Shown: positions 3,782-64,000 of the stretch, piece by piece
How positions within the stretch are numbered: position 1 is the first letter of the stretch
Layout: each line of letters begins with the position of its first letter
NCBI GenBank assembly: GCA_000708835.1
Contig: DF237433.1
Location: 1-64,000 of the forward strand
Origin: Klebsormidium nitens
Taxonomy: Eukaryota > Plantae > Klebsormidiophyceae
Length of the DNA stretch: 64,000 bases
Reading direction: 5' to 3'
Position numbers and translations under genes: made by a program
The notes under the pieces: model-generated
What the model saw: only the letters and a program-made list of their open reading frames with translations
Databases searched by the model: none
Told to the model about the DNA's origin: nothing

Positions 3782-6607
3782 CTAATCACAATCATCATAC
3801 TCGCAGCCGGATTTCAGTCGAACCCCTGAAAGGCCCTTGAATTGGCCTTGGGACTGTACCTGACTATCCGTGAATCGACCATCAAAAACCAAACGGTTAG
3901 CGCCTTCGGCAAACTCTAGAATACGTTTCTTAAGCCTCGTTGCCGACAACGAGCTGGTCAGATCCTCTTCCTTAAGCCAAGCCCGAAACGCTTCCCCAAG
4001 CCGTTCACCAACCGCTAAGTGCCAGGTCGGCTTTGTCCCTGGGTTGATGTCTTCGAATTCGAGGCAGTCTACGATCCACCGTCTTGCAATGTCGGAATCA
4101 TTGATATAGGCTTTGACAGCGTCCTCCATGACACGAGGACGGCGCATCAATGGGAGACTCCTTGGATTTGCACGCTTGAGCTCGTGATAACGTTTTGCTC
4201 CTTCTGTATACCATGACAGGCCTTCATCTCGACCCTGTTCACTCTTTAGATACGCTTCAAGTGTAGAATCCATGAGCTTCTGGCGTGGCTTGCTTGGATC
4301 AAGCTTTTCGGGAGGTAAGAATGTGACCAGCATCGGCAGAAGGGCCAAGCGTCGCGTAACACAATAGGTTACGTTTTGAAGAACGGGCCGGTAATTGGTA
4401 TTGAGGACGGTCTTAATACTGATTTTGAAAGTCTCCTGTTTGCTATGCAATCCGCGCCCTGTAGCCGTTCCCGATCCAGACCAGGCTTTTATCGCGGCTT
4501 CGTTCAAGACCGCCTTTTCGCCGGACTCATCCATCTCTCCAAGCCTCCCACCTCGAAGGGCCATTATATGGCTCGAAGCTGATCCAGCCGACCGCTTTCC
4601 CGCCTCGATGATGCAGTCCTCAGACATAAGAACAGCATAGCTTCCCAGAACCTCGAAGTTTGCTAGTTTTGTCAAAGACTTTCCGTTAGCTCCATTGCCT
4701 TGCTTGATCAAGAATAATTGCTCGCTCGTGTCTGCAGTCATACAATATCCGCAGAAAAGTTGATACCAATCGAGCACTTCTCTGTCGTCGTTGAAGCAAT
4801 CGAGCAGAAATTTCTCGAATCGGCTACCGCCTTTTGGCAAGCCGCGAAAAGCCGCCTTGGATGCACGTGAACACAACTGCGCGGGATGGAAAGCGAGCAA
4901 CTTTCCAGTTTCGGTATCAATGACGCCGTTGACGCATGCAAACAAGCACGGGTTGGCGATATCCATCAGCTCACTCAGGCTTTCAGGAGCTTGCAATGAA
5001 TTGATGACAAACTCGAGGCACACTCGAACCTCGGATCTCCGCGTCAAGTCGACTAGATCTTTCCTTTCCGGAAACGGATGCGTTTTGTTGACTATCCTCC
5101 ATGCTTCGTCACATATTTTTCTTTCTTCGTCGGATATCGGGTTGGATGCCCATTCTGGGAGTACCGAGTCAAGGGTCATTGGCTTGTTCATCTGTTTATA
5201 GATTGCTTGCTTGAAGGCGCTCGATCTTTGATTCGAATACCAGGTCAGGATGCGAGACATGTGGGTGCTGAAGACGCTTTGTACGTGGTATGCATTATCA
5301 ATTATCCAGCGGTGTCCGTTCCAATACTGAAAAGATTTTCCCTCAGCGATAATGCGTCCGTTAACGAGATACATAGCCGAGAATATTGCTGCCATTCCAC
5401 GATATCGCTGGGTCACATTACGCTTGATCAGATTGAGTTATGCTTCGAGCGCGGACTCTGACAACTTTCTCGAGTTGTTTGGAAACATACTTTTGTCGTG
5501 TATGGGATGCAATCTCAAAGGGTTGGCATCAAGCAAGGATATTGGAAGTCCGATGTTGCCAAGCTCCACAAGAGGTTTATCCGTACATTCGGAACCAAAG
5601 CATCGATAGAAGATGGTCCATCCGCGCTTCACAAGGGTCATATTATTACTACCATTGTGCCGATGCCCGTGTATGCAAGTTCGTGGGCCCTCACAGATAA
5701 ATGGATAGAGCATGCCATACGAACCTTGAAAGGACACATTTCCAGAATATCGCACATTTTCATCGAGGTTAGCGTCTCGCAACAATTTTATCATTGCATC
5801 AACGATTTTTGCATGCTCGACTGGTTGTGTCTCATGTGAGATATTACGATCCTCTTCTAGGTACATATTATTACCAACAATGCTTACTTTGCCAAGCTCC
5901 TCTGTTTGGTCTGATTCGGAACCACCTACCTCTAGTCCGTGGACTGGGTTGCAAGTCGACGCAAGACTTCCATTCTTCGATCTTCGTGCTGAATCGTTGA
6001 GGAACTTGATAACCCATGATGGAGCTGGTCTGATATTCGTTCTCAAGGGTTGCGTGCACCATGTGTATTTCAGCCCAACATCGTCAGAGCCCGGGGGAGC
6101 CAATGCTATCCCTCCTTCTCCGCGCCCATCAATACCGTAAAAGTGGCCTTTGTAATCAACTCCGGCAAAACATTTACCCGATTGAAGCCCTTCTTTCAGG
6201 GATCCGCCATAAGAGAAATAGTAATGAAAACCTCCGCTTGCAGTCGTTGCTCTCAACGTGTCCGGTTCCCCATGCTCCGCAACTAATCCCTTCCAAAGAG
6301 GCATGCCGGCTAAAAAATCATCATCGGGTTTGTCTCGATTATCAACGTCGAGTACGAAAATATCCGAGATGGCCCCGGTCTTGATGGCAACGAAGTTATA
6401 CTGTTTATCTTCGATAAATTCCTTGATTCGACTTTGCGCGGCTCTCCAATCGGATGGCGACCTAATGGCCCAATCGCCTTGGGAATGCGGCATCGTCCCC
6501 TTGATGCTCTTTGATCCGTCATCCGTTACTCCGACTTTTGCGGGTATCGCATACAGCCCTTGCTGTGCATATGCCTCAAAGACGTCAGCCATCGAGCTCG
6601 TCGCCAT
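3782..6607 (-). pseudogene. Intronless bifunctional primase-polymerase (PrimPol) + D5/SF3 helicase fusion (~940 codons) interrupted by one in-frame TAA at 5440-5438
   Basis: ORFs 5438-6727 and 3782-5416 are in the same frame, separated only by TAA plus 7 codons (SALEA*LNLIKRNVTQRY). PrimPol motifs AIKTG..IFVLDVD and TTASGGFHYYF; Zn-like motif CIHGHRH..SNN..YRC; D5 motifs FACVNGVIDTETG, Walker A QGNGANGKS, GEMDES, VLNTNYRP. Confidence 0.88.
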
Positions 6608-51971: not shown

Positions 51972-53225
51972 TCACGGGACTCTGTTATCTGTTTCTGGAA
52001 GACCGGGACACTTCTCTCTTTCTCTGGTTCCTACAGTAATCCGCATAAGACAACAACCAGATCCTGGTATCCGGGTTGTCTTATTGTGAGCTCTACTTGT
52101 CGCCTTGAGGCTGGCTGGCCGTTCACTCTGATATACCAGGCGTCTCCGTAACCAACAAGCCGCTATGGCAAAGAACACAACCATGAATCCTGTCAGTACC
52201 ATGCTGAGAACGGTGGAAACCATAGCGAGTGACTCAAAGTGTCTGTTAGCCACGTACAGCTCAAGTTCCTCCAAGGGAACACGTCGGCCTCCGTAAGGAT
52301 CCGGCAGCCAGGCACAGCCACCAGAGACGCCCACGTAAAAGTTGAAGTCCACTGATTGGCACAGCTCCAACCGGGCAGTCGCGTTTGCAGCTTCCAGGTA
52401 CTGATTCAGCCCGTGAGCGGGGTTGGGAAGGGTTACCGGTCCCGAGTTTTCAACCTTGGGCCAGACCGTTAGCAGTTCTTTGGTTGCACTGTAAGCTATG
52501 AACGGTGCCAGGAAAACCATAAGGAGGAACACGGATACTATGACCAGCTCCCAGATCGCTTTCACACGATCCGAAAACTTTAAATCTCTGCTGACCCTTA
52601 CACCGTTTGCCTGTTCCTCCAGAGCCCCTAAAGAAAAAGCTGACCTCAAATTGGCAAAGACAGGTGTCTCAGGATCCAAGGAAGCCATATCGTCTGTACT
52701 TGGATTCTTGCGCACCCTACTCTTTGCGCCAAATCTGCTCCATTCACTTCTGAGGTATGAAACGAAGTGAAGGCACGCGGCAAGAGGGACAATCACCGTC
52801 AGAGTGAGTATTTGCGTGACCAAGATGGAGCCTCCTGTTACGAGACTAAAGTAAGACCAAGTGAACAAAGCCCAAAACCCTATGCTCGAACCCGCCAGAT
52901 GAGTTGAGCCCACAAGCGTCAGTAGGGGAGGGGGAGGGTACTCCAAATCGCAGCTGCTGTTGGGCGCTTGTACTTGGTAGAACTCCAGAAAGAGTTCCCA
53001 CTTTCGCTGGCACTTCACGACCTGGAGGGGGTGGGTGTTGTTACTTCCAAACAGGGGGTTTGTAAGAGAGGAGTTGCTGCGCAGGAAGGCGTTCACCAAG
53101 TCTGGCTCCGGAAGTGACAGGCACTGGCGCAGACAAGCTCCTCCAGGGGGGCAAGCCAACGCTTGAACAAAGCAGACGACGCAGGCTAGGACCAGCCAGA
53201 AGGTTAGCACCCTGTTTCCAGCCAT
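51972..53225 (-). CDS. Membrane-protein paralogue C, intact; signal peptide plus about 4 TM segments, unknown family
   Basis: 417-aa intronless ORF with hydrophobic segments and conserved Cys motifs (VVKC, SSCD, LELC, GGCAWLPDPY). Confidence 0.75.
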   Translation of the reverse strand: MAGNRVLTFWLVLACVVCFVQALACPPGGACLRQCLSLPEPDLVNAFLRSNSSLTNPLFGSNNTHPLQVVKCQRKWELFLEFYQVQAPNSSCDLEYPPPPLLTLVGSTHLAGSSIGFWALFTWSYFSLVTGGSILVTQILTLTVIVPLAACLHFVSYLRSEWSRFGAKSRVRKNPSTDDMASLDPETPVFANLRSAFSLGALEEQANGVRVSRDLKFSDRVKAIWELVIVSVFLLMVFLAPFIAYSATKELLTVWPKVENSGPVTLPNPAHGLNQYLEAANATARLELCQSVDFNFYVGVSGGCAWLPDPYGGRRVPLEELELYVANRHFESLAMVSTVLSMVLTGFMVVFFAIAACWLRRRLVYQSERPASLKATSRAHNKTTRIPGSGCCLMRITVGTREREKCPGLPETDNRVP

Positions 53226-53600: not shown

Positions 53601-53913
53601 GAGCCAAAAGGGGCCCGGCGGGCTCACGCCATTCCGTTACCAAGCACTCAACAGACCATTCCCATCAGAAGGTTAACTTTGACATGATCCCCAGCATATG
53701 GAAGCTCTTCAAGAACGGGCACAACTGAGCGGCTCTGGCTAAAGAAAAAGGGGACGCCTGTTTAGAGGAGTGCTTGCTAAGTTCTTCATGAGTGCGCACT
53801 GATAGGAGTGCATATCCAGCGAAGGTGCAAAGGTATCAGAAGTTGTGCATGCGGATGTTCTCAGATGACGGACTAGTCTTGGGTACAAAAGCTGGTCATC
53901 CAATCGTGTCGTG

Positions 53914-56900
53914 ATGGCAAGAGGCCGGCCTCATGGCCGGTCCAAGTCCGATCACAGAGTCTGCCAGGAGGCTCGTCATGCACGCGCTGCTGAGTACAGG
54001 GAGAGGATCGCCATCAGTGCTGAGCAGCAGGAGGCACGCATCGCTGCTGTGAATGCTAAGTGCAACGTGGAGGATGCCCCTCGTAGGCAGCGGGGGCAGA
54101 AGTCGAGGGAGTCAAAGACCAAGGCAGGGGCGGCTCGGATGTCCACAGGGGGCCGTGCTTGCAAAGCGTCTGGCAGTGGAAAGAAGAGAGCAAAGAAGGG
54201 CCTCGAACATGTGCTTGGCAGAGCTGCAGAAAGAGGTGAGTTCTTGTGCATGGCTGCTGGTTTGATTGGTTTGCCTTCTGAGGCCGAGGCCAAGCAGAAG
54301 CTAGGACGCTTTGCGCGAAAGGTGAATGGTGGGCTGGCTCTGTGATGTATACCAAGAAGAGCGTTTGTTTTTTAGTAGACTGATGGGCATTTTTTGGTAC
54401 AATGCAGTCAGTCGTAACCTTGTTCCGACAGTCACATGGATGGCTGGCCTTGCATTGTTGTACCAAGAACAGTGCGCTTCTGTGTAGACATTGAAGGGAA
54501 TGAACTGATACACATAAGTATTGGTAGTACCGCTAGAAATGAAGGGTGCGGTTGGCTCTGCAGCTCTGTACCAAAAAAAGCGTGGTCTTAGTTTGGGAAG
54601 ATTGCCCCGAGGCCTCCATTGTACCAGGAACAGTTTGCCTCCATTCACGAGCATAGTGACTGCTGGCTCTGCAAGAACGTACCAAGCTTTGCCCTTTTCT
54701 CATCAGAATATAAGATGCTGATCTTGGTACATGCTGTCAAATCACAAAGTCCTAAACAATCATAGCGGGCATGGTTTCCCTGGAGTGTACCACAAACAGC
54801 CTCTTCCTCTTAGAGAAAGAAAGGCAGATTCTTGGTACATACTGGCAATGACAAACCTTCAACCCCACTGCCAGAAGAAAGAGACTTGACTGCAAAAGGC
54901 AGCGGTGACGCGGCACGCACCAAGTTTTGCATGCATCTCTAATCTTAGACTCCAGGTTCATTACCCAACCCTCGGCGCTTCTTCATTGCAGACTTGCACA
55001 GTCTCTACTGCCACGCGTGCGGCGCCCTTGCAGAGTTTGGGCTGAGGGGAGGCAAGGAGGGGGGCAGCGTCAAGTACACGTGCAGAGCGCACGCCACGCC
55101 GAATGGGTGCTTTCGGATCGACCGAGTTCGTGCAGGTGAGAGCATCTGGGGAGCCTGCTGTTGACATGGTCTGAGATTCATGCAATGTTCGTAGCTGCTC
55201 CCCTCGGGTCAGCAACGTTTCTTTGAAGTAGAATGTTGATATTGACGTGCTCTAGACTCTCCTGCAGATTGGGCAGAGGGCCAAGAGTTGCGCCGCTTGA
55301 GAGCAGAGGAGAGAAGATTGGAACAGGAGCTGCGAAAGCTGGGAGGGAGCTCGTCCAATGCAAAACCAACATCTGGTGAGCGTGCGGTGCTGGTTTAGAC
55401 ATCTGACTGGTTTGGTTCTGCTCTTGTACACAATCTCAGAGCAGCAGGTTCCCTGTCATGCCTCCGATGCGTTGTTGCTCCTTCTGTGTGCATTCCACAC
55501 GTGACTCAACAGTGACGGCAACTCAACGCTTCACTTTTCGTTTCTGCAGCTGCAGTCGGGGATGAGTTTCAAAGTTCGGGGGTTTGGGCTTCGATGCCCA
55601 TGAGCCGGTCGCTGATAGGTAAGGCATCTTCAATGCAGCTAAGGCAATGTAGTTGCTTCTAGAGCATCTCAGACCTGTCCTCTACGACGATCCTCTTGTT
55701 TTGCCCAGGGATCCTCCAATCCTTTCTTGTTGAGTCAAGCTGCATCCAGTATCTGGCTTGACAATGGGTTTCTCCTCACCTGCAGCCACGCTCTTGATGA
55801 TCGGTGGCATCGAGCGTAATCCTGGACCTGCCGCAGACAAGGGGAGCCCGTACAAGGGAGATCTTGCACTTCCAGGCAGGACCAGCACAGGCTGCAACGA
55901 AGCGCCAGGAACTGTTGTTGAATCTGATTGGCCCCTTAACCTGCTGCCCTCTCTCGACGTGAGCGTGAGTCTAGAAGTCTTTTTCTTCATGCAGTTCAGT
56001 TCTATGTCGCACCCAAGCCCTGGACTGAATCGTAGATTGTGTAAGCACGGAATATCTGCTGGCCGAGATGCCTGTGAACACTCGATGGTCTTAGTTTCAT
56101 CGGGCTAAGGCGCGCAGGTAGCGAGAGCCGCTGGCGAGCATCACAGCTTAACAATCAGCAACCCTTACATCATGCTGCGCAGGAGGCTCATGGCAGTGGG
56201 CATTTCACCATCTCTCGTTTTGAAGGCTATCAATGGTTTCCTTGCAGGCGCTCAACCCAAGACACATGACTTCCGAGAACGGAAGAGTAACTCATGCAGG
56301 CAGGGGGCTGGACCTGTTGGCAGGGATTCCGGAACGAGGGGATAGCGAAGGCCAGACTCGTCAGCTACACCTGCGGCTACGAGGAGGAGCAGACGACGAG
56401 CCTATGCCCGAGGTACTTTGCCTCTCTCACAGACACTGCAGAGACAGGGGAGAAGAGCACTTGCAAGTTCAACGGTGTCCATCTGTTGTGACCACCTTGT
56501 ACTTGCTGGAATGTAGTGTGTACTTAAGAAAACACAGGTCAGACTGTGACCCTCTGCATCAAGGGTTTCTTAGGAGACACTTTCTTATTGTCCATTGCAG
56601 CACCTTGTGCCTCACACGCCCCTTGTAACCTTGCTCACAGCAACAGCTCTCCTCTGCAGGCCCACAGCGACAAGCCTGCCCTCATTCGAATCCAGCTGAG
56701 AGGTACCAACGAAAGATGCTCTTTTGAACCACCTCGCCCTCGAGAAGCAGTTCTGGAGCACCTAAGAGATGAGGAACGCTGGGGAGAAGGAAAGATCACA
56801 AAGGTGGTGGATGGGGAGGAGACTGCTTGTATGAAGGGGGATGTGCTTCAAGCCGGCGAATATATCTTCACAGCATTCGAAGGTGAGCCACCACCAGTCT

Positions 56901-59900
56901 TGATTCCCAGGGGCGGAAAGAAGGAGAAATACATCCCTTACTAAGTCAGTGACGTCTCATTTGTGGTGCCCACTTTTGGCGCCTTGTAAGCACAACCTCT
57001 GCTTAGCATCTTCTAATTGCCAATCAACAGCAAGTCAGCTGGCGCTTATAAGAGCACTAACAAGGGGGAAGACCTGCTGCGGCACTAGGACTTCGTTCAC
57101 TTTGGGGTTTCCTTTTGGGCATAGTAAAGCTGTGACCTCGCGCAGAGACTTGCTGCAAAATCAAGGAACTGCTCACGCACCCTTATGCAGTCTTTAATTT
57201 ACTAGGGTCTCCTTAGTTGATAGATAAGCCCTATCGAGTGTGATTCAGAAGTATGTTTGACTTAGGCAAACCTGAGCAGCCAGAATGCAGGTTCAAAGAA
57301 GAGGCATGTCAATGTTTCACGTGTTTCACGACTTCTGCAGTCCAAGGAGCATCCAGTGCTGGACCTTCAGCCGCACAGGCGTCGAGGCTGGAGCCAACAG
57401 AAGGGGCCAAAGGTACTAGCCACTCGGATATTGTCTGCCGAAATCGTTGTGGACCATAATTGCTTATCTGCTGAGAGGGGCTGTGATTGGGCATCGTAGG
57501 ATTTTCCAACTGTTAACGTCTGCGAGCTTGACATCAAGGCAATTACTTAGTGGGCTGAAAAAGCTGAAGCTTTTTTGGAGGAGTGTCACTTGGTTGGGAT
57601 ACGAATGGGCTGACATAGGGGACGCCTTTGTTTGAAAGCGCGCTTCTGCAGAAGTCACGATTTGCCTATCCTGCTAGGGTCTTCTTCACAACCCCTTGCT
57701 CGCGTCAGCATCGAAGGCCCCTTCATTCCAGAGCAGAGCTGGTTAGGGTGGCTCATTCGTATCCGCTTTAATGACCATACCTTATCTTTTTCTGGTTCAG
57801 GGGATCTCGGCCCTTCACCAATCAAAAACTGGAAGGAGCGGGAGAAAGTGGTGGGAGACAAGATAGTAGAAGCCCACGAAGCGCTGGCGCATTGCATGGT
57901 TAACGAACCCGATTCCTTCAGAAGTCCGGTGACAAACGAGCACACAGAGCGCATTGGAGGCCTTAACATTGTGGCTGCCCCGCCGGACACCCCCCTGCTC
58001 CTTCTCACAAACCTGCCCTCAGGAAACCAAGGAGGAGTCGCCACAGATGATGAGGTGCTAAAGTGGTTTCACAAAGCCGACAATGAGCCGATTATTCCTC
58101 CCCCTACGGCTGTCCTGCTTGGGCCCCCAGGAATTGGCAAGACCCGGAAGTGCATGCAGCTGGGGTCAACTGAGCCTGGCGTCATTTACCTGACCTGTGA
58201 ACGGAGTGGGGAGTTGAGGGCCCCTGACATGGAAGCTGTTCGCGCGAAGCTGGAGCAATGCGAGGCAGACCCGCAGTCTTGGAAGGCCAACTTTGTGCGT
58301 GCCAAGCGACACCTATTGGCGTGCCTGTATGCCCGGGTTTCCCTTCTCAAGTATTTCCTGGACAATCAGGCACAGCAGGCTTGGGACTTAAGGCACTGGA
58401 TGCTCTTCCAGTCGGGAGTAGCGTTTGGCGCCTCAATGGTGAGCACAACAACCCAGCTTATAAGTGCTTCTCGGAAGATTGGCTGCGGAGGGCATCAGTT
58501 TTCAAGGCAACTGATAGGATTGTCAAACTGGTCCGTCCCAAGTGTGGACGCATCTACCTCCAAAGTCTGGCTGTACCTGCGTCTGTCGCTGTTCTGTCCA
58601 GAGAGGCAAGGAAAGTTGCTGCCAAGCCTCTCATCTCGTGTGTGGATGTCCACTCCAATTTGAGTGCCTTTGTTAGATTGCGCAGCAAAAAGCAAGCACG
58701 CTGCACATGTCTTCATGGCTGTGGAGCAGGAAGCAACTGCTCACATGCCCTTTGTTTCCGTGCCAGGCGCCCATGTTGGAACTCTACCGCTCTGCTAGCC
58801 TGGTGCATGTGGATGAGCTAGAGGAGCAGCTGGCAGCCTTGCTGGGAGAGTGCACCAAACTTCTTGGGGGCAATCGGCGGGTGTGCATTGCCTTGGACGA
58901 GGCGCAGTCCTGGTCGTCTGCACTAAACCATTGCTTCTCCAATGGTAACGAGCCCCCTCAGGGTCGGCCGCTCCTGACTGCTGCCATGCGCATCCTGTCA
59001 GACCCGCCACTTTCCCAGCACCTGAAGATCCTACTTGCGGGCACAGGCTTCTCGCTCCTGAGCACAAACATCATTGATTCCGCACTCGCGAAGCATGGCA
59101 CGTTCAAAGCCCGGCAGTTGTCGCTTTTCAAAACCCTTTCAGAAGATGAGGTGCGACAATACGCGGCGCACTTTGCGGGCAAAGAAGAGGCAGATGGTGC
59201 GGTAGAACAGATCAGAAAGCTGGTAGGGCGAGCGCGCTTCGTTGTGGGGGCTGTTCAGCGTTGGGTGGGGGAGGGGGGGGAACGATCATTGAGGGATGTG
59301 CTTGAAGAAGAGTATGACCTGCACACGGACCCAGACGCGTGGCACCGCTCTACCCTGGTGCGAGCCCGGTACGAGAAGCTGTACCTCTACGGTACCTTGT
59401 GGGCGCAGGCTCAGCACCCTCAGTCGGCCAAGCTGTTTCAGCAGTTGAAGAAATTGACATTTGCGCATTGGGTGATTGGCCAGCCGGCATGCTTCCGGAA
59501 CAAGGAGGAAGTAGACATTGTGAACCTTGGCTGCGCCCTTCTTGAAGGGGAACGGGATACTCAGATGGCGGCCATCAGGGAGCCCGTCGTTCAGACTGCA
59601 GTCCAAAATTTCCTAAAGCACGAGATGCAGTGGGATCCACAGACGCACGCCGAAGAGATGTTCTGTGAGAGCGGCTTCCAGCCCCAAGTGCTCGGGAACT
59701 GGTGGGAGCTGGTTGTGGCGCAGTTCATCCGTCACATGTTCGAGACGGAGGAGGCGCTTGCCGACAAGCCGCTCTTTAGCAACCTAGGCCGTGACACGTT
59801 ACCCCCTGCATTCAGGGAGATGGGAGCCAGTCTGGTGGCGGTTTGGCGTGATGAAACCTCTGGGCAGTTCCGCTGGGAGGAAATCAAAAAGGAAGAGCGG

Positions 59901-60744
59901 TTTTTGAGAATGAAGGTTGGAACCACCGCTTACAGGCTGGTTGACTTCCTGAAGGACCCTCAAGGATTTGTCCTCTTCTTCCCTGAAGACAAGGCGGGCC
60001 CCGATCTCGTCTTTTTCATGGTCGTGGGCGGCAAGCTCTTCCTCGTGTTCGTACAGCTCAAACTTGCGGTAGCGGTGAAAGAGCCCTTGAAGGTGATGCG
60101 TACCGTGGACCCCAGCACTGCTTACAGCAATCACCCCTTAGAACGTGAGTTTCGGGAGGAGATCAAGGAGGCGCTTGGGCCTGACAGTGGGCTTGCTGGC
60201 GTGATTGCGTGCATCATAGGCTACCCGCTTAAGTTGCCACAGTCTATCTTCGAGGAGGTCCGTGATTGCAAGCCGCCAAGGAGGGCCTCGAAGCGCCTGC
60301 AGTTGGAGGTGGTTGCGGACTACGACATCTCGCCAGCCGTACGAGTCGTCGTCGATGGTAGCCAAAAGTCGGATGAGTTGGCGCGGACAGATCTGAAGCC
60401 CCTTATTGATGCACTGAAGAAGGCTGGGGCTGTCGAGACCGGTACCTCTCCGACTGAGGTGAGGCAATGTGCGCAAGTGCCGGCATGTCAAAGTAGCATG
60501 TGGGTGCGGTGAAAAGGGGAATGAAGGTGCGTCCTTAGGAGTGCCGCTGTGGGGTTGGCGGCTTCTGGATAGCCTCCAAGAGTGTCAACGATTCTATGTC
60601 ACGCGCTTTCAAGCTGAGATTGCATTAGCATTCCGGTGCTTGCATTACCATGTGGTAGAAACTCTTTTTATGAACATCAGCATCATCCGTCCATTCCTTT
60701 CTATACAGGGATTGAGCAGCTCTACCCCCATGGACGTGAGCTGA
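53914..60744 (+). CDS. ~1220-aa multidomain CR-type NTPase + REase protein with N-terminal basic region, Cys/His motif, 2A-like and LRLRGG motifs; exons 53914-54235, 54992-55135, 55550-55618, 55786-55964, 56248-56412, 56660-56882, 57341-57412, 57678-58438, 58767-60458, 60709-60744
   Basis: All nine introns are GT-AG with matching phases, and the exons sum to 3663 nt (1221 codons). Walker A LLGPPGIGKT, Walker B VCIALDEAQ, LVGRARF, GNWWELVV, REase-like AGPDLVF..FVQLK. The joining of the first four exons is less certain than the catalytic part. Confidence 0.72.
54330..54860. repeat. Array of alternating tggtac/gtacca motifs in intron 1
   Basis: About ten gtacca or tggtac cores at roughly 50-70 bp spacing. 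Confidence 0.6.
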
Positions 60745-61728
60745 TTGCCGCAAGTGAGGAGTCCGGGCAGAGACCAAGCGCCTAGATAACTTAGGCAACA
60801 TGAATCGAGACATTCTCTGAAATGCGCGTTCCATGGACCAAGAGATGCTAAAACCGATTCTCAATGATGGCCCCAGTCCTTGCAATCAGGACAAGACGTA
60901 TGTACATCTGGTCATGCCAACGAGCCTTCATCTTGCATCCCTATGGAGCCCCGCATAGGTTTGGATTGGGGTGCATGAGTCTCATGAACCAATTTTGGCC
61001 TCTTTACTCTGGACAGAGGCCATGCATCTAGACAACATGCATGTGCTTGTAGCTGACTTTTGCAATCAATGATAACAAAGAATAGTGAGTAGGAAACATC
61101 TGACAGCAGTATGTGACTGGGTAAGGCACTAGGTACATCAGCAAGGAGCATCATGATTAAAGGGTATTTCGAGTAGGCTTAGCTACAACCGCTACTTCAA
61201 GTTGCAAACATTGCCTGTGTTGGAGCACATGGCACCGTTTTGCTCAACTCAACGGGGCTTATGCAACCCGAGCCTAATAGCGTGAAAAGGTTACCGCTTC
61301 GCTTTGCGCGTCATGATGGCCTTGCAAAATCGTCGCTGAACCATGCAGTAGTTGACGAGCTGTGATGCATGTATAGAACAGCCCAACAACGTGTAGTACT
61401 AAGCATCATTGCACGCTCATCAGATATATAAGTTGAGCTTTGCATGGTTCAGGACGCCAGTAAGCGCGCTTGCGAGAGTTACCGGAATGCTTAGCATCTT
61501 CACGATCGATACTGGTCTGAATCTGAGCCTTCACCGGTCACCGGAGCGCCTGCCCGGATATCGCCCTTTCGGCAAAGCATATGCGCCATGAGAGCCAGCA
61601 CAGTCACCATACTCATCCGAGCCATTCCCGCTCACTCTGAGTCGGGCAGCTAGTTGCCAGCGATTCTGAGGTCAGTGGCGTATACTGCAATATCCTCAGC
61701 ATTTTACATGGTATGGCCGGTAACAGGT

Positions 61729-62384: not shown

Positions 62385-64000
62385 ATGGCGCGAAGCCGGC
62401 CTTGCGGTCGGTCTAAGTCTGATCACAGGGTCTGCCAGGCTGCTCGCTTTGCACGAGCTGCGGAGTATAGGAAGCGCGTCGAAATCAGTGCAGAAAGGCA
62501 AGCGTTTCTGATCGCTGCTGTCAATGCGCAGAGCGATGACATACCTGCCCCTGGCCGCCGGCGGTGCCAAAGGTCAGAGCGATTGAAGAATGAGGGGCAG
62601 CCTGCTCGTAAGGGTTTACTTGGCCGGCGCTTCACCGCTGCTGGCCAGAAAGCAAAGCGGCAGGATCCGCGAGTACTCAAAGATGTTTTAGATTGCGTCG
62701 CGGAACACGGTGAGCAGAAGGCAATTTGTTTGATTCTTCAAATGCCAACTCTTAAGGTCAGGGGATATTTGATTGCTGGCCCTGCAAGCAGGTGTATCAA
62801 GGCTTGTTCTAACTTCTTCGAGTAACAGTAGGACATCTAGAGATCTTTTGGTTTCAGGAAAGGTGTGTTGTTTAGAACTTCGGATTCACAGTGGGTCAGA
62901 GATTCCGCAATCAACGCCAACCAGAGAAACTTTGGTGGCATGGCTGGGCGTGTGTAGAGAAGTGTACCAAGTTCTGGCCAATTCTTTCTAAAGATAACAA
63001 TAGGCCATTTCTTGGTACAGCGCCAGAAGTTGGTGGCATGGCTGGGTGTGCGTTGAACATGGTACTAGGTTTGAACCACTTATTCTAGAAGAGAACAATG
63101 GCGCCAAAAGCTTGAGGCAGGACTGGGCATGTGTAGGCAGCAGTATCAAGAGTTGACCAGTTAACAATGGATCATTTCTTGGTACCGCGCCAAGACTTGA
63201 TGGCATGGCTGGGCGTGACTTGGGAATGTACCAGGTTTTGACCACTTATTTCCAAACATAACAGTGACACCAAGAGTTGATAGCATGCCAAGGCGTGCAC
63301 ACGGAAGTGAACCAAGTTCTGACCCGTTCTTTCTCGAGATGATTATGGGTCACTTCTTGCTACAGCTCCCAAAACTGATGGCATGGCTGGGAAGTGTACC
63401 AAGTTCCGGCCAATTCTTTCTTTAGATAACAATGGGCCGATTCTTGGTACAGCGCAAAAACTTGATGGCGTGCCCGGTTCTGCAGGCAGGTGTATGCGGT
63501 AGGAATAATAGCCCTGATTTTCTTTGCCTTCATCTCTTTTCCAGACCCACATGGCATCCATTGCTGCGAGTGCAATACGGCCGCAGAGTTTGGGCTTCGT
63601 GGGAGCAAGAACGGAGGGAACGTCAGATACTGTTGCGAGCGCCACGGCCCAACGGAGGGTTGTTTCCATATCGACAGGGATCGCACAGGTAAGAGGAGAG
63701 ACACACACCTTGCTTGTGCGCAGAAAACCCGCCAAGTCAACCTTGATCGTGCAGGTCTTTGCATAGCTGCAGCCCGTGGCAGCCTCCCATTGAGCGTGCC
63801 ATTTCATCATTGCAGCATGGGTTCAGGGCCGCGAGAAGACGCGACGGAAGGCAAACGCTGCCTGTCTGGAACGCGAGCAGCATCGGAAGGGATCTGGGTC
63901 ACTTGCTGCTCTTTGGTCACGGCCAGCAACGGCAGGTGAGCGCCCAGAATTGTCAAAGGGACTGGATTCAAGATTGTGCAAGGCCGAAGGTCGCATTCTC
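62385..64000 (+). CDS. Paralogue of the N-terminus of the 53914 gene, running off the window; exons 62385-62709, 63545-63688, ~63817-63936
   Basis: MARSRPCGRSKSDHRVCQAARFARAAEYR versus MARGRPHGRSKSDHRVCQEARHARAAEYR; same phase-1 donor; a 144-nt Cys exon (HCCECNTAAEFGLRGS..YCCERH) of the same length as in copy 1. Confidence 0.7.
62900..63500. repeat. Tandem ~85-120 bp repeats (ttcttggtac...tggcatggctggg...gtaccaagtt) in intron 1 of the paralogue
   Basis: tggcatggctggg at about 62936, 63035, 63200, 63379, plus more diverged copies. Confidence 0.8.

Follow-up and report, generated by a model that had tools for sequence, protein, structure and literature searches.

How might one gene of the streptophyte alga Klebsormidium nitens come to encode signals that would split its own product, and which of these signals are likely to be used? 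We considered this question for a modelled, spliced gene on the forward strand (53914-60512) of contig DF237433.1 (assembly GCA_000708835.1), within an analysed stretch of 64,000 nucleotides (nt; positions 1 to 64,000) that we call the window. The gene encodes a leader, a 2A-like peptide of the StopGo type and, further downstream, a P-loop NTPase joined to a nuclease of restriction endonuclease (REase) fold. A sequence-only reading of this DNA had proposed a host-processed polyprotein that frees the nuclease by ribosome skipping, by deubiquitinase cleavage after LRGG strings, or by both. Our results support one part of that proposal: a conserved and, as judged from its sequence, genuine 2A/StopGo-type peptide stands, in the gene model, in frame upstream of the P-loop NTPase and REase-fold module, and the gene is best read as encoding a polyprotein that is split during translation. 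The LRGG cleavage steps were not supported. The locus appears to belong to a small gene family known to date from Klebsormidium only.

The three strings on which the proposal was built are all present in the window translation where it had placed them, namely the 2A-like motif at 55791-55829, which encodes LLMIGGIERNPGP, LHLRLRGG at 56365-56388 and FGLRGG at 55036-55053, all on the forward strand. The 2A peptide is assembled across an intron, as splicing of exon 4 to exon 5 (donor 55619, acceptor 55785) is in phase and gives SRSLI-A-TLLMIGG; at the window locus the peptide reads SRSLI followed by ATLLMIGGIERNPGP. The same junction is found in three annotated paralogues, P0006 (KFL_000380150), P0046 (KFL_002470030) and P0047 (KFL_006010010), and this link of the exon chain assumed earlier is supported. 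The core GIERNPGP (55806-55829) lies on an ancestral mini-exon of 56 nt (55786-55841, encoding (A)TLLMIGGIERNPGPAADK), within which the predicted skip site is the bond between Gly (55824-55826) and Pro (55827-55829). Homologous mini-exons, also of 56 nt each, occur at 5754-5809 of the Logan contig L001 and at 3202-3257 of L004, inside the annotated KFL_006010010. The motif reads AALLMMGGIEINPGP in L001 (short form LLMMGGIEINPGP), ATLLLRGGVESNPGP in P0046 (short form LLLRGGVESNPGP) and ATLLMRGGVETNPGP in P0047 (short form LLMRGGVETNPGP), and has decayed to CVECNPGL in P0006. Leader DNA of L001 is about 75% identical to that of the window and becomes unalignable just downstream, yet the 2A motif is kept. 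In the annotated paralogue P0047, the motif is in frame with coding sequence that continues downstream.

Six NPGP strings are encoded in the six frames of the window, and only the one at 55791-55829 has a 2A-type context. A DNA pattern for [V/I/M]ExNPGP matched once in the window, against 0.01 matches expected from shuffles. Such an expectation per window would by itself be compatible with some chance matches genome-wide, and the case for a 2A peptide appears to rest on conservation, the same pattern being found at the homologous site in both L001 and L004. The peptide also agrees with current descriptions of StopGo sequences. Li et al. 2026 (PMC12846837) widened the functional core to (D/G/C/N)(V/I)ExNPGP, reported L-rich upstream motifs that end in (A/G/S)G at p12, and found rare core variants tested in vitro to be about 90% or more active. 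GIERNPGP fits this core, and the upstream hexapeptide, TLLMIG-G, fits the L-rich class when compared by eye with the published motif descriptions. The earlier worry that G in place of the consensus D weakens skipping can be set aside, because G at p12 is as frequent as D in functional StopGo sites and is no defect (PMC12846837). Recent reviews regard StopGo as essentially viral, and the study of Li et al. calls its use by cells rare and found no natural use by plant viruses (PMC12846837). Our literature search returned no paper describing the Klebsormidium leader-2A family, and the main texts of PMC13405545 and PMC12338488 do not mention Klebsormidium.

The gene model was phased by hand, exon by exon, in DNA of about 52% G+C with many introns of the GT...CTGCAG type. 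The ten junctions of the model all follow GT..AG and keep phase; coding sequence as far as the Gly of NPG comprises 684 nt (228 residues) and the remainder 3042 nt (1014 residues), both divisible by three. Exon 1 (53914-54235) starts at the first in-frame ATG after a stop at 53866, encodes a basic N-terminus (MARGRPHGRSK...) and ends in phase 1; its N-terminal string matches P0047 and a second copy in the window, at 62385. Similarity to P0047 continues upstream of this ATG (53881-53913, GYKSWSSNRVVM versus GIESWSFNFLIM) despite the stop at 53866, and the true start, or an upstream exon of the leader, may differ from the model. The basic N-terminus is not signal-like by eye, and StopGo works on the ribosomes of the producer, both of which speak against the term host-processed in the sense of a delivered effector. 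Exon 2 (54992-55135) carries a zinc-type motif, CxxC-x18-CxxH-x5-C, and is 67-69% identical to P0006 and P0046 and 72% identical to L001. It matched no Pfam family in a scan at expectation values (E) up to 10, apart from a chance match to Imm31. As a candidate for this motif, the EsV-1-7 cysteine-rich motif was rejected, since its Pfam profile was not matched and the likeness (FG..G...C..H...G) is a visual one; the P0047 leader gave nothing usable in an ESM Atlas search. Exon 3 (55268-55375, phase 1 at both ends) encodes a charged, coiled-coil-like stretch, ELRRLRAEERRLEQELRKLGG, whose conservation in L001 extends, on inspection, to P0046 and P0047. Exon 4 (55550-55618) ends in ...MPMSRSLI and one further base, the first of the Ala codon, at a donor (ATAG-GTAAGG) that is invariant among the window, L001 and L004 (alignment A2). 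Its start is marked by tandem acceptors, CTGCAG CTGCAG, 6 nt apart (55550/55556) and both in frame, and two isoforms two residues apart are possible.

The enzyme part is encoded by the last two exons. Exon 9 (57732-58438) encodes the N-terminal portion of the P-loop NTPase, including the Walker A motif GPPGIGKT (58121-58144); it gives a weak Pfam AAA_22 match below the cutoff, is 27-29% identical to P0006 and P0047, and has a phase-1 acceptor that is also usable in L001. Exon 10 (58767-60512, stop 60510-60512) contributes Walker B (CIALDEAQ), a winged helix and a PD-(D/E)xK nuclease, whose core motifs, GPD (59997-60005) and QxK (60054-60062), are conserved in relatives: across 33 relatives (alignment A1), the PD of GPDL (P212, D213) is invariant and the Q of VQxK (Q230) nearly so. 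An AlphaFold2 (AF2) model of the last 381 residues reached a predicted local distance difference test (pLDDT) score of 79.6. Its residues 1-89 match the winged helices of Cdc6, ORC and NLR proteins (Z 6-7), and residues about 89-350 match the PD-(D/E)xK nucleases Card1, MspJI, HamA, BspD6I, Cdn1 and PaqCI (Z 5.2-5.6); a match to SAMD9 (Z 6.3) was also obtained, with weak matches to FokI and VC1899 by Foldseek. The Z values are middling, and combined with the motifs they give moderate support to a predicted payload of NTPase, winged helix and nuclease of REase fold. When each exon, P0046 and P0047 were scanned against Pfam, NCBIfam and PADLOC, weak AAA matches were all that appeared, and a PDB sequence search with the final exon found nothing.

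Relatives of the 601-residue open reading frame (ORF) 58707-60512 numbered 44 among 1.84 billion representatives, and those looked up include proteins of K. nitens, of a chytrid (Rhizophlyctis) and of a fern (Adiantum); in Logan assemblies, a word search with the same ORF gave only near-identical relatives. The N-terminal heads of these payload relatives vary among TPR, SAM and CCCH types and include one sub-threshold Crinkler head, in P0035. The Crinkler N-terminal header (PF20147) matched no window exon and was seen only in this distant relative, below the cutoff. For both the leader and the enzyme part, the closest named relatives are K. nitens proteins. P0046 and P0047 are alike (60% identity) from the leader through the 2A to the first small post-2A domain, and their payloads are unrelated; the leader-2A cassette therefore precedes different payloads. 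The first post-2A element of the paralogues is a small helical domain (W..E....P.LL..L......L..WR.L), present once in P0046 and twice in P0006 and P0047. L001 has a different exon after its 2A (5989-6163), and the region past the skip site is the most variable of the family.

In the window copy, the passage from the 2A peptide to the NTPase has been altered. The mini-exon of the relatives ends in ...AAG-GTGAGC or ...GAG-GTGAGC (L001, L004), and in the three-way alignment A2 (columns 292-293) the window has GG at 55842-55843 where both have GT. With this ancestral donor destroyed, a link between the 2A peptide and the nuclease requires a cryptic donor further downstream. From 55842 to 55958 the frame runs on, stop-free, into the former intron, up to in-phase candidate donors 117 and 123 nt downstream, at 55959 (gtgagc) or 55965 (gtgagt). 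Exon 5 as modelled (55786-55958, or -55964) joins the mini-exon to this run-on, which if left unspliced ends at a stop at 56109. At its start the run-on is homologous to intronic DNA in L001 and L004, and the residues directly after NPGP in the window copy derive from former intron sequence. The onward link to the LRLRGG exon, which the earlier reading had assumed, is in frame only through one of these non-ancestral donors. Approximately 55842-57585 of the window is without counterpart in L001 and the flanking 57585-61277 is 91% identical to it, so the middle of the window copy has been replaced. This segment holds exons 6 to 8. Exon 7 (56660-56882, phase 0 to 1) encodes a predicted small alpha/beta domain; its single-sequence AF2 model has the element order b-b-a-b-b-a-b, which is beta-grasp-like, at low confidence (pLDDT 63). 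Foldseek, VIA-align and a PDB sequence search found no match to its fold or sequence, ESM Atlas gave nothing usable, and its assignment as ubiquitin-like was rejected as unproven. Exon 8 (57341-57412, phase 1 to 1), a putative Ser/Ala-rich linker, was placed by its CTGCAG acceptor, its GT donor and its fitting phases.

Exon 6 (56248-56412, phase 0 to 0) is specific to this copy and brings the question of the LRGG strings to a point, as it ends in LHLRLRGG followed by ADDEPMPE. Natural ubiquitin fusions are cut after an LRGG tail, and a deubiquitinase acting after LRLRGG, after GLRGG, or after both would free the nuclease from its N-terminal piece. What speaks for this is that exon 6 aligns without gaps to residues 42-76 of ubiquitin, approximately, retaining L43V, A46, G47, L50, L56I, L67 and L69 together with the exact RLRGG tail, and that its only four matches at E<10 against all PDB sequences are ubiquitins. 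Those matches have E values of 0.28-5, however, and exon 6 did not match Pfam ubiquitin at E up to 10. The N-terminal half of the fold was not found in any of the three frames of 55830-56420, a PDB sequence search with the alternative-frame ORF 56109-56342 gave nothing, and the preceding residues come from the former intron; a complete beta-grasp fold of about 70 residues ahead of the LRLRGG tail was not recognisable. Cellular USP and UCH enzymes require a folded ubiquitin body. Exon 6 has no counterpart in any of the four relatives compared (L001, P0006, P0046 and P0047), and a word search with its ORF was blank. Most simply, exon 6 would be a captured fragment of a ubiquitin-like exon and not a second processing site; cleavage at LRLRGG is possible but unsupported. 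The upstream FGLRGG reads as a structural part of the zinc-type motif, and not as a cut site, because it is embedded in the conserved Cys/His pattern and because the string is GLRGG in P0006 and P0046 and GLRGS in three copies (L001, P0047 and the second window copy). Of the processing signals proposed for this gene, only the 2A peptide is upheld, and we regard release of the nuclease by a deubiquitinase as very improbable.

We consider it probable, though far from assured, that the family combines a leader ending in a StopGo/2A peptide with a variable payload, that one mRNA yields two proteins, and that the window copy is a remodelled member. The leader, of about 228 residues, would comprise the basic N-terminus, the zinc-type CxxC...CxxH motif and the coiled coil, with the 2A built across an intron on the 56-nt mini-exon. 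The Leu-rich stretch and GIERNPG would stall the nascent chain on the alga's own ribosomes, the leader would be released with a ...NPG end, and translation would restart at Pro. The second product, of about 1014 residues, would consist of the linker region, an ORC/Cdc6- or STAND-like P-loop NTPase, the winged helix and a REase-fold nuclease of the Crinkler-associated kind, produced at an equal or lower dose than the leader. Several observations weigh against this reading. The motif can decay within the family, as in P0006; the exon chain of the window copy relies on a putative cryptic donor; exons 6 to 8 have no homologues in any sequences searched; the Logan contigs L002 and L003 are colinear, unspliced genomic DNA (98% identical, intron retained) and not transcripts; and no reporter data on these particular Klebsormidium peptides were found in the texts consulted.

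The window copy may alternatively be a decaying or rearranged paralogue, whose leader-2A transcript either continues into the former intron, with a stop at 56109, or undergoes degradation, whose NTPase-nuclease is silent or separately expressed, and whose 2A is intact because the change is recent. The change from GT to GG, the segment unrelated to L001 with its exons lacking relatives, and the degenerate motif of the neighbouring paralogue P0006 all favour such decay. Against it stand the two strong, in-phase donors, the stop-free run-on and the later junctions, which all keep phase, as well as the intact 581-residue final exon, whose frame strains or relatives 91-98% identical keep open. Decay is on balance unlikely, although it retains an appreciable probability. 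Another possibility is that the peptide acts mainly as a translational brake and not as a separator, holding a potentially toxic nuclease at low dose. In a preprint (PMC13405545), eukaryotic 2A-like sequences with at least three upstream Leu tend to fall in a 'reduction' class, death-domain proteins included, and the upstream part of the window peptide has three Leu plus Ile, Met and Ile. The octapeptide is, however, a perfect StopGo core, of a kind whose variants gave about 90% or more separation in vitro, and both effects can coexist; a predominantly braking role is improbable. Returning to the split polyprotein, we further suggest, as a doubtful speculation, that the leader-StopGo cassette may serve a selfish or defence-type gene family as a portable module for expression at the 5' end. 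It would place a zinc-finger/coiled-coil partner (a guard, an antidote or a nucleic-acid chaperone) in fixed excess over dangerous enzymes encoded by the same mRNA, and in the window copy a captured ubiquitin tail would add a second maturation step that depends on a deubiquitinase.

Other features of the locus concern its tandem arrangement and its neighbours. The second copy begins 1.9 kb past the end of the first, with exon 1' at 62385-62709 and the zinc-motif exon 2' (FGLRGS) at 63545-63688, both on the forward strand and with the same exon lengths and phases as the first copy; its 2A exon would lie beyond the end of the window. L001 likewise begins a next copy near its 3' end. Intron 1 of both window copies (54340-54900 and 62850-63470) is full of tandem units that have degenerated and, where measured, repeat every 87 bp; they contain ...TGGTACC...GGCATGGCTGG... 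and recur in L001 (11931-12364). In the annotation of K. nitens, a single NTPase-REase gene is divided between the neighbouring models P0006 and P0004 (KFL_000380160): P0006, which has a duplicated, degenerate 2A motif, breaks off within the NTPase, and the REase part falls to P0004. Just upstream of the leader, the reverse strand (51972-53225) holds an intact ORF of 417 residues with several hydrophobic stretches that look membrane-spanning; it matched no Pfam family.

A streptophyte-alga family that keeps a textbook StopGo on a dedicated mini-exon before unrelated payloads would offer a natural system for asking why cells split proteins during translation, nuclease dosing and a fixed leader-to-enzyme ratio being candidate reasons. 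The window copy, with its lost donor and replaced middle segment, illustrates how such an arrangement may be eroded or rebuilt. Among known systems, the payload invites comparison with Crinkler/CR-type modules, which reportedly pair an NTPase with a REase. The order of a P-loop NTPase followed by a PD-(D/E)xK nuclease is the same, as are the swappable N-terminal heads, and relatives, whose heads are of TPR, SAM, CCCH or Crinkler type, are present in chytrids, ferns and Klebsormidium. In contrast to those modules, the gene described here shows no LxLFLAK ubiquitin-like N-terminal domain in Pfam scans, and it belongs to a free-living organism, with no sign of secretion. With ubiquitin fusion precursors, such as ubiquitin-eL40 (PDB 9eho chain m), the locus shares ...LRLRGG directly followed by more polypeptide; here, however, nothing but the C-terminal half of the fold can be recognised, and that weakly, and paralogues do not conserve it.

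The closest parallels to the peptide itself are viral and cellular 2A sequences. Like the StopGo/2A peptides of viruses (F2A from foot-and-mouth disease virus and the widened set of Li et al. 2026, PMC12846837), the Klebsormidium peptide has a G-I-E-x-N-P-G-P core, a Leu-rich upstream part ending in GG, and, in the gene model, a place between two functional modules of one reading frame. It differs in that its gene is nuclear, spliced and that of a streptophyte alga, in that a 56-nt exon is devoted to it, and in that it would separate a zinc-finger leader from an NTPase-nuclease and not a capsid from a replicase. The 2A-like sequences of sea-urchin NOD-like receptors (Roulston et al. 2016, PMC4981915) likewise belong to a cellular gene and precede a large STAND-type NTPase; there, the 2A-like sequence stands at the very N-terminus and also serves as a signal peptide, whereas here about 215 conserved leader residues precede it, none of them signal-like. 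Non-long-terminal-repeat retrotransposons (Odon et al. 2013, PMC3708506; Snell and Matreyek, PMC13405545) also carry a Leu-rich 2A-like sequence near the front of the enzyme of a multi-copy element, with a coiled-coil, nucleic-acid-binding-type partner made from one message. The present family differs from them in having neither reverse transcriptase nor APE endonuclease; its payload is an NTPase with a REase-fold nuclease, and its copies lie in tandem.

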